Assembly (NCBI RefSeq): GCF_006345805.1
Contig: NC_043012.1
Coordinates: 13,640,001-13,704,000, forward strand
DNA: 64,000 bases
Reading direction: 5' to 3'
DNA from: Octopus sinensis
Lineage: Eukaryota
The position numbers and the translations under genes were made by a program. The notes under the pieces are model-generated. The model had not been told where the DNA came from and searched no databases. It saw nothing but the letters and a program-made list of their open reading frames with translations. Numbering within the stretch: position 1 is the stretch's first letter; each line of letters begins with the position of its first letter. Below, piece by piece: positions 10,526 to 60,456 of the stretch.

Positions 10526-11719
10526 CTATTCTATACACAAGAAAGAAGTAAATAATATTGAAGTTATTACTGTTACTACAATGCTAATTTTCAGGAATGC
10601 CTCATCAAGTCGAAAATATTCGGTTATACCACATTTTCTTTTCGTCTTTGATTTTGAGTTCAAAGTTACGGGATCGATCTCTCTCGTGGAAATTGTTGAA
10701 ATATCCGCAATTTTGTTGCTTCGAGATTTGTATGTCGTTTGATCTGGGACATTCGATGTCTTTTCATCAGATGACTGAATGACATACAACTTGCATATAA
10801 TCACCGACCCGAGTGTTGCGATTCCACTTAAGAATGATAATAGCATCAAGTATGTCATAAGAAGTGAAGGGAATTTGGAATTCTTCGGTGTAGTTTTCTC
10901 GATTTCAACAAGATACAAGACGTTTGATAAAAATATTGTCGTAGCTAGAGAAACTTTTTCCCCTGATTCCGGAGGTAGAACGAAGACAAATATAGTCAAA
11001 ATAGTCATCATTATTGTTGGAATCAGCATAGCTACAATAGCTATTGTGAGTTTACGTCGTAAATGCAAATCAGCAACTGCAAAGCTGAATCTGTGGTCGG
11101 TAGCATTTTTCATACCATTGTAGTCGATGTCCCACTTATAGTTTTGGGAATAATTTAAATCCTTATATGTAAGTGACATTATTCTGGTATGGACAGGCTC
11201 ATGCAAAGCAACGCAAATGAATATTTCGCACTCATGCTGGTCAAACGGATAGGCGAAAGCATTGAAAGAGCAGTAGGTTTTCAGCAGTTTTAGTGACCGC
11301 ATTGTGACACGTCCATTATTAGAAACTTTTACTTCCTGAAAGATGCCTTTCTCTTCTGATTCCTTCATTGAATTGCACATTGCGATTTCTGGTGTCCACA
11401 GCTTATCTTTTTCTAGGTACATAACTGTAATGTTGTTGTAATCCAATGGATTCCAAGTCAGAAATTCGTCAGTCCATTCTAGACCAAAGTCGTACCGAGC
11501 TATAACTATGTTATTTACAAAGTCCAAACCATAGAATGTGTGAAGAAATAAAACAGCTTCTATATTGATAGTTGTAGATGAATCAATAACAGGCCTCACA
11601 CTTTTGCTATAATTAGATAATAAAGTCGCTTGTAATAATGTTTCATCATTGTACATGGGGCTCGAAATTACTATAGATATAACCGGTATCAGAATCAGAA
11701 AATATTTGTTTGACATCAT
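10526..11719 (-). CDS. Chemotactile receptor (CR), atypical Cys-loop ligand-gated ion channel subunit, single exon, 397 aa (here CR-A)
   Basis: Intact ORF with signal peptide, WTPEIAMCN loop A, Cys-loop C-SFNAFAYPFDQHE-C (13-residue spacing), M1-PESGEK-M2 (VSLATTIFLSN), M3, short intracellular loop and M4. No loop-C vicinal Cys and no introns. Confidence 0.95.
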   Translation of the reverse strand: MMSNKYFLILIPVISIVISSPMYNDETLLQATLLSNYSKSVRPVIDSSTTINIEAVLFLHTFYGLDFVNNIVIARYDFGLEWTDEFLTWNPLDYNNITVMYLEKDKLWTPEIAMCNSMKESEEKGIFQEVKVSNNGRVTMRSLKLLKTYCSFNAFAYPFDQHECEIFICVALHEPVHTRIMSLTYKDLNYSQNYKWDIDYNGMKNATDHRFSFAVADLHLRRKLTIAIVAMLIPTIMMTILTIFVFVLPPESGEKVSLATTIFLSNVLYLVEIEKTTPKNSKFPSLLMTYLMLLSFLSGIATLGSVIICKLYVIQSSDEKTSNVPDQTTYKSRSNKIADISTISTREIDPVTLNSKSKTKRKCGITEYFRLDEAFLKISIVVTVITSILFTSFLCIE

Positions 11720-12589
11720 TTTTCAGAATTAATTCCGAATTGAAATTTCAGTGTTTCCGTGTGTAATTTAATATTGTCATCTTATGAATTTAGATTACTG
11801 GTAATTTTATAATTTGTTCAATTATCTTGAATGAAAGAAAAGCAGTTATTAAATTAATTGTAATATGATATATTTCTAATATCTGGAATACGGGCAAGTA
11901 ATTTCGTTACTCATAAAGGCATCAAAGACATGATTATCAAAATATGCTGCGGATAAACCTTTCTGATTTTCGTTTTAAAGTATGAAACTAATAAATTACT
12001 ATTGTGTTATTGGTGAATTTTTACACGAGAGATGTGAACAGAATTTACCAGTTTGCAGAAGGTTTCTCATTTAAATACGTCAATTTTGTAAATTTCATTA
12101 GATTAATTGGCGAATTATATTAGGTATATTCCCATATTAGCGAATTTAGTCTCAACTGGAAATTATGTTAGTAAATATGTTCCGTGTGACAAAATGTACG
12201 CTGTATTTCCATTGTTGATATGTAAAATAGCAGATTGTCGTGCATATGTGTATGTGTGTTGATAAAGAAACGAATTACTCCCAAACCTGTATGTGATCCT
12301 CAAAATAATGGGTTGAATCAGCAATCTGAAACAAAACGATAATTCATTATATCCATCATACAAACTCATTACGCTTGAAAAACACATATGTACTATGTTT
12401 CTGTTGACCATCTTCCAACCATTACACTCAATGACATAAATATAGCAATATTAAAATAATGTAAAGTACGCAACGATACGTTTACTAAGTAATGTGCATC
12501 ATCAGCATCACTCTTAGTGGGAAAATACGAAATGGTTCAGAGCTACGTAACTCTAATGATCTCAAGATTTGTCCGAGTATAGACATACT

Positions 12590-12818
12590 CCTATTTCTTT
12601 ACTACCCACAAAGGGCTAAACACAGAGAGGACAAACAAGGACAGACAAACGGATTAAGTCGATTATATCGCCCCCAGTGCGTTACTGGTACATATTTAAT
12701 CGACCCCGAAAGAATGAAACGTAAAGTCGACCTCGATAGAATTTGAACTCAGAACGCAACGGCAGACGAAATACTGCTAAGCATTTCGCCCGGCGTGCTA
12801 ACGCTTCTGCCAGCTCGC
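12590..12818 (-). mobile_element. SINE family B, near full length
   Basis: Head GCGAGCTGGCAGAAGCGTTAGCACGCCGGGCGAAATGCTTAGC through tail AAAGAAATAGG. Confidence 0.85.
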
Positions 12819-12879
12819 AGAGTTATATATATATAATATATATATATATATATATATATGTGTGTGTGTGTGTGTGTGT

Positions 12880-13095
12880 GTGTGTGTTTGTGCTTGTCCC
12901 CCTAGCATTGCTTGACAACCGATGCTGGTGTGCTTACGTCCCCGTCAATTAGCGGTTCGGCAAATGAGACCGATAGAATAAGTACTGGGCTTACAAAGAA
13001 TAAGTCCCGGGGTCGATTTGCTCGACTAAAGGCGGTGCTTCAGCATGGCCGCAGTCAAATGACTGAAACAAGTAAAAGAGTAAAGAGTAAAGAGT
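12880..13095 (+). mobile_element. SINE family A, 3' half
   Basis: Body and GGCGGTGCTTCAGCATGGCCGCAGTCAAATGACTGAAAC end with (AGTAAAG)n tail. Confidence 0.85.
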
Positions 13096-57692: not shown

Positions 57693-58339
57693 CCGTGAGT
57701 CAATGAAGTATGCAAACTGAAAGTTACTAGAGCATAGCCTCCAAATTAACGTAACAGATTTAAAGAAACAAAAATATCCCTTTCTATATCTTTACACTTG
57801 TATGCAGATATTCATGTTCATATAAGTTCAGACATGTAACCTTACGATGAGCTATATTAATAATAATAATAATAATAATAATAATAATAATATAATAATA
57901 ATAATAATAATAATAATAATAACAATAATAGGTGATGGTGATAATGGTAAAAACAAAAATAACAATAATAAGATACTGTTGTGACTACACGTAAAACAAT
58001 GTCATTGATGATGATGATGATGATGATGATGATGATGATGAAGGTGATGATAATAATAATAATAATAATAATAATAATAATAATAATAATAACAATAATA
58101 ATAATAATAATAACAATAATAACAATAATAACTGACAGCTTCTTTTTTTCCGTATTTTACTCTCATTTTTTCGAACTAATACAGGCAGAGTGCATCTTTT
58201 ATAAGTTTTTTTTAAAAATGTTCAGAGATAAAACTATCAACAAAAAAAAACAGACGAATACAGATCTGCTAGACTTAAGAAGCTGCACTACGAGCAATGT
58301 TTACGTACAGAGAACCCTAAACTGACAGATCCATCTCCT

Positions 58340-58860
58340 AATGTATGAGTCGAAGCTCGTCATGCTTCAATGTCAACAAAACAAACTACAAACCGCAATG
58401 GTCATCGCGCGCATTACAAAAGACCACGTACCCGAAAATTTAATCAAATTCTGATTGAAAAATCAGCTACTGGATCAAATCTTCCCAACACACAGGAGCT
58501 GGACGTACCACACAGCCGGAATATTCCAACAGATGGCCATCCATGCCCGTCACCAAATAATCAAAAGAAAAAGAAAGAAAAATAGTCTAGGGAAGATAAT
58601 TAAGAAGTTCTTGCGGCCTTCTGCCATGCCATATGAGGACTGGATGTTAAAACTTGTCTCAAAATATGAAAACAAGAAAGCATCATACTCAGTAACAAAA
58701 AAGGCAAAGGAATATCTAAGTGAATTCCGAATACAACAAACTTCGGAATTAGAGATAGACATACAAGAAACAAACGCTGGATGACACCAGGTACCCCAAA
58801 CTCTGCCAGTGCTCTAGCAAAATCTTCAGGAGATTAATCCACAATATACCCATTAATCCA
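58340..58860 (+). mobile_element. R4/Dong-like fragment (degenerate)
   Basis: EDWMLKLVSKYENKKASYSVTKKAKEY resembles the post-RT region of this clade. Confidence 0.5.
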
Positions 58861-59329
58861 AAATCTGAAATATATATAAATATATATATGTGTATATTGA
58901 CAGGGCAAGACTGCTAGGTAGTCGGCCGTATGCTAGAAATAGATCATCAACGATCAAACTACAAAGAAAGTTCTCTAGTTCTCTAGAGTAAAAATTCAGC
59001 GAACACCAGAACCAAATTTGGCGGACTGGACAGATGAAAATTTATATAAAAAACAGAATTAATTGCATAACTCGGTTTCGGCCTTTAACAAAAGAAATTA
59101 CTTACATAATTCAAATGTCCGTTGCCTCATCAGTACAATCGTTCAGTGTAAATGCAATCCGAAAACTAACCCCAGCTTTCTGTGCCAAAACAGACACGTG
59201 TTTAGTTTTACCGAATACATTAGGGATAAAATTTCAAATGTCTTAGTTCCGGCGCGCTAAAAAATTCCTGAAGCGAAGAACTGCAGTAAATAATTCACTG
59301 CGGTTAGTGCTTGCTACTGGAGAACGTAT

Positions 59330-60456
59330 TTATTTCAATTAATAAAAAGTAAAAAAAAAAGAATTATATATTGCTAATCCGGTTCAAGTGGATATGTAAA
59401 CGCGAATTTTTAGAAATATCACATCAAGTTGAACGCAATTAAAAATGTCCTTACTCCATTTTCTTTCTTGAACAGTTTTCGACCTTACTTACCTTTTCGG
59501 ATCGGGATGTGAAAGGTATTGAAATATTCGTAGTTTTCTAAATTTGATAATATTTTTATATGATGGATTCGATTTTTCTGCATCAGATGTTTGATTTAGA
59601 TACAACCTACTGACAAGTACTGAATCAAATGTGCTCATTCCACTCAGCAGTGATACTAATAATATATAGTACGTAAAATGTGAAAGATATTTTGAATTTT
59701 TTGGTGTATTCTTACCGATTTGCACAACGTACACGACATTTGATAAAAAAAAATATCGTGGTATCCAGAGGAAGTTTTTCACCTGATTTAGGTGGCAGAA
59801 GGAGAAAAAATAGATAAAACAGTCAACATTACAGTCTCAATTATCATAGCTACTATACCAAAATTGAATAAGTAAATCGAAGCATATGCGTAACTGAGAG
59901 AGAATTTCAGACCCTTCATTTCTCCACGGATCTGAACATCCCATTCATAGTTTTGTATATTGTTTAAATCATTATGTTTAAATGCTTTTTTCTTGAATGG
60001 ATTGGCTTCAGCAAAGCCGTACACATGGATAAAAGTAAGCATTGACTTCACAAAATGTAAGTAATAATTTCTAAGACCACATTTCCACAGATCCATTACT
60101 ATAAAGAATTAGTTCGCGTAAACACTCTTTCTCTTCTGAACCCTTCAATGCATTACAAATTGCTAAATTTGGTATCCAAAGCTGATCTTTTGACACATTA
60201 AACACTGGTAATTATATAGAGCAATCATTTCCATGTTAGATTTTCGTCGACCCATCGTTGCTCTAAAATGTAGCGATCCTTAAGTACGTTATTTCAAAAA
60301 TCCAATTCATGAAGTCTCTCAAACTGTAAGACAACATATATCTCAACAGCTGTAATTAGATTAATGACATGTCATATATATGACATATATAGCGCTGTAA
60401 CGTAATGTCGATAGAATCTGAGTAAAAATGGAACCAGAATATTATATCAGTATCAT
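59330..60456 (-). pseudogene. Degenerate chemotactile receptor pseudogene (CR-psi)
   Basis: Stitched frames give VINLITAVEIY..LHELDF*NN..RWVDENLTW, KDQLWIPNLAICNALKGSEEK, CEVNAYFYP, QNYEWDV, LPPKSGEK, LSNVVYVVQIGKNTPKNSKY and VQLDVIFLKI, collinear with the intact CRs. Several stops, frameshifts and deletions. Confidence 0.9.

Follow-up and report, generated by a model that had tools for sequence, protein, structure and literature searches.

Octopus suckers taste by touch with chemotactile receptors (CRs). These receptors are derived from nicotinic acetylcholine receptors (nAChRs) and are activated by hydrophobic ligands (PMC11526382; bioRxiv 10.1101/2025.03.03.641191), and their genes, of which Octopus bimaculoides has up to 26, are without introns and lie in tandem clusters (PMC11526382). 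Mining across species has brought together 235 CRs from 29–30 cephalopod species (bioRxiv 10.1101/2025.10.28.685082), and 14 CR-clade transcripts have been reported for Octopus sinensis (PMC13174522). Here, a 64-kb stretch of the O. sinensis genome (GCA_006345805.1, chromosome CM016874.1, positions 13,640,001–13,704,000), hereafter called the window, was analysed for the CR genes that it carries. An initial annotation of this DNA had described a tandem cluster of four CR genes, three intact and one dead, and had regarded intronless tandem CR arrays as established for octopus, which is what the reviews say (PMC11526382). The intact genes are named here CRa, CRb and CRc, and the dead copy Psi-CR. 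We are highly confident that the window represents a segment of the O. sinensis CR array, made of tandem, co-oriented, intronless genes of nAChR descent. Since this family has already been published, together with its organisation in the genome and the way in which it evolves, the kind of system is already known; the window is a clean example of it and adds nothing new in kind.

The window contains nine open reading frames (ORFs) of at least 150 aa, and three of these are of ~400 aa and lie on the minus strand. They correspond to CRa (10526–11719, 397 aa), CRb (37378–38580, 400 aa) and CRc (44062–45294, 410 aa from the first ATG), each of which matches the Pfam domains Neur_chan_LBD (PF02931) and Neur_chan_memb (PF02932). 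When the three CR proteins were used as tblastn queries over the 64 kb, exactly one extra CR-like locus was found at ~59348–60419 on the minus strand, split over three frames, and this copy, Psi-CR, was delimited to 59330–60456 (minus strand) from the tblastn pieces, a three-frame translation and a frameshift-aware alignment. No further CR relics better than E ~1 were detected in the window by low-stringency tblastn. Thus, the three intact genes and one pseudogene of the initial annotation were recovered as three uninterrupted ORFs and one lesioned copy, all on the minus strand, and the span given there also agreed, as position 10526 is the last base of the CRa stop codon and 60456 is the first base of the ancestral ATG of Psi-CR. 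The description of the genes as single-exon Cys-loop genes held as well, because every coding region consists of a single ORF whose alignment with the cloned CRT1 protein of O. bimaculoides extends from one end to the other; the alignment is gap-free for CRc and of full length for CRa and CRb, and intronless here refers to the coding region from ATG to stop and not to the untranslated regions.

The family identity of these genes was examined by comparing each ORF with all solved structures in the Protein Data Bank (PDB), and the top match of all three was O. bimaculoides CRT1. CRc aligned with CRT1 (9E6B/8EIS) without gaps at 778 and 744 bits, as against 136 bits for squid CRB1 and ~85–119 bits for nAChR/5-HT3A. 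The corresponding scores were 510, 150 and ~90–113 bits for CRb, and 500, 124 and ~88–106 bits for CRa. In neighbour-joining (NJ) trees constructed from Kimura distances with 200 bootstraps, the octopus CR-like proteins and squid CRB1 formed one clade with a bootstrap of 100, and the window genes were placed inside it, with human alpha4, Torpedo beta and non-cephalopod nAChR-like proteins outside. A phylogeny had been suggested earlier as a check on these genes, and the grouping with canonical nAChR subunits that would have spoken against their being CRs was not seen for any of the three.

The acetylcholine (ACh) signature is lost from CRa, CRb and CRc. The loop-A Tyr is replaced with Cys and the loop-B Trp with Ala, loop C has neither the Cys-Cys pair nor TyrC1, and the loop-D Trp has become Tyr in CRb and CRc and Asp in CRa. 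The ACh aromatic residues and the alpha-type loop-C Cys-Cys that characterise a canonical nAChR were therefore not found in the window genes. Both Cys-loop cysteines and the M2 9' Leu are retained in the three intact genes, and their M1–M4 segments align with those of CRT1. The closest database proteins are from octopus and carry automatic names such as “acetylcholine receptor subunit beta-type acr-2-like”; taken together with other public names (“neuronal acetylcholine receptor subunit beta-3,” “5-HT3A-like”) and with the Pfam domains that the window genes have in common with nAChRs, they could be read as pointing to ordinary neuronal nAChR subunits serving synaptic transmission. This is hardly credible, as the CRT1 score is 4–7 times that of any nAChR, the bootstrap-100 CR clade leaves out both alpha4 and Torpedo beta, neither the ACh aromatic box nor the vicinal cysteines of loop C remain, and the genes are intronless and tandem while ancestral nAChR genes have introns (PMC13174522). 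One-to-one orthologs of the window genes are present in O. bimaculoides, O. vulgaris and a further octopus species, and the ORFs are uninterrupted in three or four species each. Judged from their sequences, the three intact window genes belong to the cephalopod CR family.

CRc is the closest of the three to a characterised receptor. It is identical to O. bimaculoides CRT1 at 347 of 399 residues (87%), the two proteins are sisters in the NJ trees (bootstrap 96–98), and the identity rises to 100% in M1–M3 and is 84% in the extracellular domain. The “CRT1-like gene” of the initial annotation is thus assigned as the O. sinensis ortholog of CRT1, an assignment based on the tree and the identity and, as regards position, on the collinearity of the surrounding array. 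The start codon shared with O. bimaculoides CRT1 and with the ortholog P0004 is the ATG at 45261, which gives a protein of 399 aa. CRc also has an extra upstream in-frame ATG (45262–45294, minus strand) that adds 11 residues (MKFHFLEVNYT) and is absent from CRT1 and P0004.

The ligand pocket was compared in the numbering of mature 8EIS, which is consistent with the published residue names. CRc is the same as CRT1 at L37, Y39, Y58, W122, F124, C150, V151, A152, L153, D168, S169 and F192, and only E167G, E190D and L191M differ among the pocket positions examined. In this comparison the hydrophobic orthosteric character of CRT1 is kept in CRc, and E104, the vestibule residue that tunes Ca2+ permeation in CRT1, is retained. 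Mutagenesis of CRT1 has shown that Y39, Y58, W122, F124, S169, F192 and others are essential and that the responses to progesterone and norharmane persist in the E167A, E190A and L191A/Q mutants; in the same study L191 was reported to be rapidly evolving under diversifying selection and important for progesterone (bioRxiv 10.1101/2025.10.28.685082). Because the residues defined as essential by mutagenesis are identical, CRc most likely retains a CRT1-like ligand profile, perhaps retuned at L191M.

The other two intact genes had been described as less familiar paralogs. They are paralogs of CRT1, but both turned out to be clear orthologs of O. bimaculoides CR genes. The ortholog of CRa in O. 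bimaculoides is P0001 (85% identity), and O. vulgaris has an ortholog with an intact 397-aa ORF (bootstrap 100 for the group); the ortholog of CRb is O. bimaculoides P0014 (bootstrap 93–100). The conservation of M1–M3 between CRa and CRT1 and the divergence of the extracellular part, which had been noticed earlier, were borne out, with 84% identity in M1–M3 against 56% in the extracellular domain. Relative to CRT1, the pocket of CRa carries Y39F, Y58D, W122R, F124L, S169L and L191R, and that of CRb carries Y39M, W122Y, S169L and L191E, with the hydrophobic character partly kept in CRb. These patterns are largely conserved within each gene's own orthologs, which suggests that CRa and CRb have stable specificities distinct from that of CRT1.

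The two paralogs also differ in the pore. The motif of CRa is the canonical ESGEKVSLA and that of CRb is ESGKKVFLA, which places Lys at -1' and Phe at 2'. The latter motif is shared by the three CRb orthologs compared; each of the other 23 octopus CR-like sequences lacks it and has ESGEKV(S/T)LA. The -1' glutamate ring is a main determinant of cation selectivity and conductance in Cys-loop receptors, and the Lys at this position of CRb would therefore be expected to alter permeation, most plausibly in heteromers. As a homomer, CRb may be non-conducting or anion-leaning, or it may be an obligate heteromeric partner that retunes neighbour CRs such as CRT1. We put forward only tentatively, and with more doubt than belief, two separate proposals, namely that CRb is a specialised subunit with altered charge selectivity and that the conserved charged pocket of CRa senses polar or charged ligands instead of hydrophobic ones.

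Selection on the intact genes was estimated as the ratio of non-synonymous to synonymous substitution (dN/dS) by the Nei-Gojobori method, each gene being compared with its orthologs. The overall ratio was 0.33 for CRc (P ~4e-9), 0.37 for CRb (P ~6e-8) and 0.64 for CRa (P ~0.04). Among the regions of CRc it was 0.02 in M1–M3, 0.51 in the extracellular domain and 0.60 in the M3–M4 loop; the respective values were 0.26, 0.31 and 0.77 for CRb and 0.21, 0.57 and 0.78 for CRa. All three intact genes are under purifying selection, with a ratio weakly below 1 for CRa.

Whether each intact ORF encodes a working O. sinensis chemoreceptor was considered in the light of these values. The exact CRa protein was not present in a collection of 5.8 billion proteins, so that the gene is apparently unannotated in O. 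sinensis, and the dN/dS of CRa is relatively high. At least one of the ORFs could accordingly be silent, have been shut off recently by a regulatory change or serve outside the sucker. We consider this unlikely, given that no ORF is interrupted in any of the three or four species in which it occurs, that all three genes have a dN/dS significantly lower than 1, with only 0.02–0.26 in M1–M3, and that all structural hallmarks are retained. A better explanation for the missing annotation is that annotation pipelines evidently have difficulty with these genes. The annotated proteins of O. sinensis P0017 and O. bimaculoides P0016 have 342 aa, where both loci are really single ORFs of 399 aa, O. vulgaris P0002 is mis-spliced over 10.4 kb despite an intact 397-aa ORF, and the N-terminus of O. 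bimaculoides P0014 is truncated in the annotation; the mis-annotated loci lie at L002:9830–11029, L010 (ORF ending at 11029) and L009:9785–10978. Separately, Logan contigs of P0004 that have similar ends in five runs were tried as transcripts and rejected, since they break at (TA)n and are collinear with the genomic flanks; being of genomic type, they are silent on expression and splicing.

The fourth copy is long dead. The frameshift-aware alignment, guided by the neighbouring full-length ORF, places Psi-CR between an ATG at 60456–60454 and ~59330. In-frame stops occur at 60444 (codon 5), 60374, 60296, 60227, 60073, (60010) and 59386, and eight frameshifts were mapped near 60411, 60200, 59980–60010, 59808, 59753, 59539, 59453 and 59371. 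About 14 codons of the signal peptide are gone, and a deletion of 5–6 codons near 60025 has removed the second Cys-loop cysteine. The start context FRIMILI*Y matches the FRIMILIQY of the neighbour gene. The identity of Psi-CR to any intact CR is 42–47%, and its branch is very long (0.63–0.68), with placement either with the neighbouring P0016/P0017 or with the P0020–P0025 lineage at a bootstrap of 51–52.

Indel errors of long reads could in principle have produced such a copy from a true locus that holds an intact fourth CR, and two of the eight frameshifts do fall in homopolymer runs (T6 and T9). The other six lie outside homopolymers, at least seven in-frame stops have arisen by substitution, the signal-peptide and Cys-loop codons are missing altogether, and three neighbour genes of the same assembly are free of such errors. 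With the low identity to any CR and the excess of change at codon positions 1 and 2 added to these, an assembly artefact is so improbable that Psi-CR is treated here as a genuine pseudogene. Compared with intact paralog pairs, Psi-CR shows ~0.05–0.10 extra divergence at codon positions 1 and 2, with position 3 near saturation, which indicates long neutral decay; as a rough estimate from these values, the decay would be about as old as, or older than, the split of O. sinensis and O. bimaculoides. When the stitched translation was searched against the 5.8-billion-protein collection, no closer intact relative of Psi-CR was found, because the decayed sequence shares too few exact 5-mers with other proteins.

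The four co-oriented CR copies occupy 50 kb of the window, and the series continues past its right edge. P0017, the 399-aa single ORF mentioned above, lies ~17 kb beyond the edge on the same strand, and P0022 follows ~41 kb past P0017, again on the same strand, so that the co-oriented CR loci in the 13.65–13.76 Mb interval number at least six. The claim of a cluster of four co-oriented genes was thus right on orientation and too small in number, as the array has at least two more CRs past the right edge. In O. bimaculoides the order is P0020, a 177-aa fragment, P0024, P0016, ..., P0001, all on the plus strand. The position of the CRa ortholog in that species was predicted before it was looked up, and the distance from P0016 to it was found to be 64.7 kb, compared with 70.7 kb for the O. 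sinensis equivalent (P0017 to CRa). The flanks of CRa are collinear with those of its orthologs, at 82–90% identity in O. bimaculoides and 94–99% in O. vulgaris. A synteny check across Octopus genomes, which had also been proposed, therefore gave a match with O. bimaculoides in order, orientation and spacing.

Relics of CR genes were also seen along the array on both sides of the species comparison. In O. sinensis, a relic of the C-terminal half of a CR, with 59% identity to P0022, lies near that gene together with weaker pieces (L011:1045–1491 and 13086–13846), and the 177-aa fragment of the O. bimaculoides array contains the Neur_chan_memb domain only (L012:16036–16569). Decay relics are common along the CR array.

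As regards the origin of the copies, the adjacent CRb and CRc are sister lineages in the NJ trees (bootstrap 76–84), and their 5' flanks share weak homology. The CRb 5' flank at 38885–39325 (minus strand), which is -305 to -745 from the ATG, is collinear with the CRc 5' flank at ~45560–45991, with 58% identity over 452 bp (blastn E = 1.7e-11). No homology was detected among the 3' flanks of the window CR copies. The shared 5' flank is only suggestive of tandem duplication at the DNA level, in which upstream sequence was copied along with the gene. Repeated independent retroposition of CR mRNAs would also yield copies without introns, and a remnant of a non-LTR (long terminal repeat) retrotransposon reverse transcriptase does lie within the array at 41789–43407 (minus strand), as three consecutive broken open frames with an RVT_1 match at 42682–43038 (E = 1.5e-16); it is situated 3' of CRc and 5' of CRb, on the strand of the CR genes. 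The lack of detectable 3' flank homology and the weakness of that at the 5' side are in keeping with retroposition too. Under independent insertion, however, there would be no reason to expect a uniform orientation, sister lineages side by side, collinear sequence shared 300–750 bp upstream of the ATG or the same order in O. bimaculoides, and reviews credit CR clusters to tandem duplication after retroduplication (PMC11526382). We therefore regard repeated retroposition as very unlikely, and the co-orientation, the adjacency of CRb and CRc and the flank homology favour tandem DNA duplication of one ancestral retrogene. The presence of CRa and CRb orthologs in O. bimaculoides indicates that the duplications are older than the species split, and no recent duplication was found in the window. 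The statement of the initial annotation that the window shows birth and death directly was accordingly upheld for death, on the lesions of Psi-CR, and not for birth, which is indicated indirectly by the tree and the layout.

From these results and the characterised O. bimaculoides receptor, the following function is proposed. Each intact gene would encode a subunit of a pentameric ligand-gated cation channel, and by homology with O. bimaculoides CRT1 the channels would be located in sensory cells of the suckers. There, the former ACh site at the subunit interfaces would bind poorly soluble, mostly hydrophobic molecules on touched surfaces and thereby open the channel, and the opening would depolarise the cell and let Ca2+ enter. 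The ligands of CRc are expected to be like those of CRT1, namely terpenoids, the microbial compounds norharmane and lumichrome, and progesterone. CRa and CRb, as older paralogs with remodelled pockets, are expected to have different ligand spectra, and CRb is a probable heteromeric partner that changes ion permeation. The array would have grown before the split of O. sinensis and O. bimaculoides, as a single ancestral intronless copy was multiplied by tandem DNA duplication, and would later have lost members by decay, with Psi-CR as one long-dead member.

Several points weigh against this scheme or parts of it. Expression in the sucker and hectocotylus of O. sinensis is assumed by analogy with O. 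bimaculoides. The tree set was partial, as it contained ~11 O. bimaculoides CRs, of which there are up to 26, and no canonical octopus nAChR. The charged residues D58, R122 and R191 make the pocket of CRa unlike the “flat hydrophobic pocket” of CRT1, and the description of the ligand as hydrophobic may therefore not apply to CRa. The dN/dS of this gene (0.64, P ~0.04) is only weakly below 1, and the changes between CRa and its O. vulgaris ortholog, seven non-synonymous and one synonymous, are too few to interpret. The preference for DNA-level over RNA-level duplication, finally, depends on 58–70% identity over short flank stretches.

The surroundings of the genes were also inspected. The window contains 33 tandem-repeat rows, mostly (TA)n, and ~23% of the non-CR bases have a match elsewhere within it, so that the earlier phrase of genes lying in a “sea of repeats” is right qualitatively. 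Among the (TA)n-type microsatellites, the sole long-period array is a tandem repeat at 6694–7167 with a 184-bp unit, 2.6 copies and 86% matches; its O. vulgaris counterpart has a lower identity (86–96%), which suggests that the copy number varies. A dispersed repeat of ~230–290 bp with 80–86% identity occurs in inverted orientation at 60666–60958, just upstream of Psi-CR, and at 10202–10429, just downstream of CRa. Farther upstream of Psi-CR, a 164-aa frame at 61915–62406 (minus strand) is C2H2 zinc-finger-like, with modest scores to the Pfam families zf-met, Zn_SUZ12 and zf-C2H2, and could be a zinc-finger gene fragment or derived from a transposable element. The upstream flank of Psi-CR (61043–61861) has an O. 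bimaculoides match at L010:20164–21029, ~9–10 kb downstream of the P0016 gene; the same spacer is ~21 kb in O. sinensis and has roughly doubled in this species or halved in O. bimaculoides. Strand-asymmetric blocks at 28000–32000 and 52000–56000 have an AT skew of -0.20 to -0.27 and a GC skew down to -0.26 and hold long open frames without a Pfam match, for example at 30516–31253. A full-length match to U6 small nuclear RNA (RF00026) was found at 301–408 on the minus strand (64 bits against a gathering score of 44; model positions 1–105 of 105). No tRNA genes were found in the window.

The analysis of a second octopus genome confirms the features of the O. bimaculoides CRs, namely an intronless, co-oriented tandem array and proteins in which the ligand-binding domain evolves fast and the channel core is nearly frozen, and for CRa the intronless structure is confirmed in O. 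vulgaris too. It provides corrected models for loci that are truncated, mis-spliced or missed in public annotation. The CRT1 ortholog of O. sinensis is identified, with L191M at a site that has been linked to progesterone sensing and species-specific mate recognition, and the pore lysine of CRb and the charged pocket of CRa are two testable subunit peculiarities. An old CR pseudogene is fully described along with further relics, which should be useful for estimating rates of birth and death.

Set beside the known systems, the window genes are nearest to CRT1 (formerly CR518; PDB 8EIS, 9E6B-D, 9YI4). CRc resembles it in length from the conserved start, in the essential pocket residues L37, Y39, Y58, W122, F124, C150, V151, L153, D168, S169 and F192 and in E104, and differs in belonging to another species, in E167G, E190D and L191M and in the extra upstream ATG; CRa and CRb are only 56–60% identical to CRT1 in the extracellular domain, and several of their essential pocket positions are changed. 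Squid CRB1 (PDB 8EIZ) and the wider cephalopod CRs share the clade (bootstrap 100), the architecture and the lost loop-C cysteine pair, but CRB1 is far more distant (124–150 bits against 500–778 for CRT1) and retains the loop-A Tyr where the octopus genes have Cys. The canonical nAChRs (human alpha4/alpha7, Torpedo alpha/beta) and 5-HT3A have the same pentameric Cys-loop fold and Cys-loop disulfide as the window genes; the M2 9' Leu is likewise shared, as is the -1' Glu ring in the case of CRa and CRc. Unlike these receptors, the window genes are without the ACh aromatic box and the vicinal cysteines, have a short M3–M4 loop and are intronless. A wider likeness exists to other chemoreceptor arrays, namely the vertebrate olfactory receptors (ORs), trace amine-associated receptors (TAARs) and bitter taste receptors (T2Rs) and the insect ionotropic receptors (IRs, from the ionotropic glutamate receptors, iGluRs), which like the CRs have intronless coding regions, tandem clusters and pseudogenes among intact genes, and of which the IRs and TAARs also share with the CRs an ancestry in neurotransmitter receptors (PMC11526382). 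In these arrays, as in the CRs, the ligand-binding parts evolve faster than the signalling core. The ORs, TAARs, T2Rs and IRs are protein families unrelated to the CRs, and the analogy is one of evolutionary mode alone.

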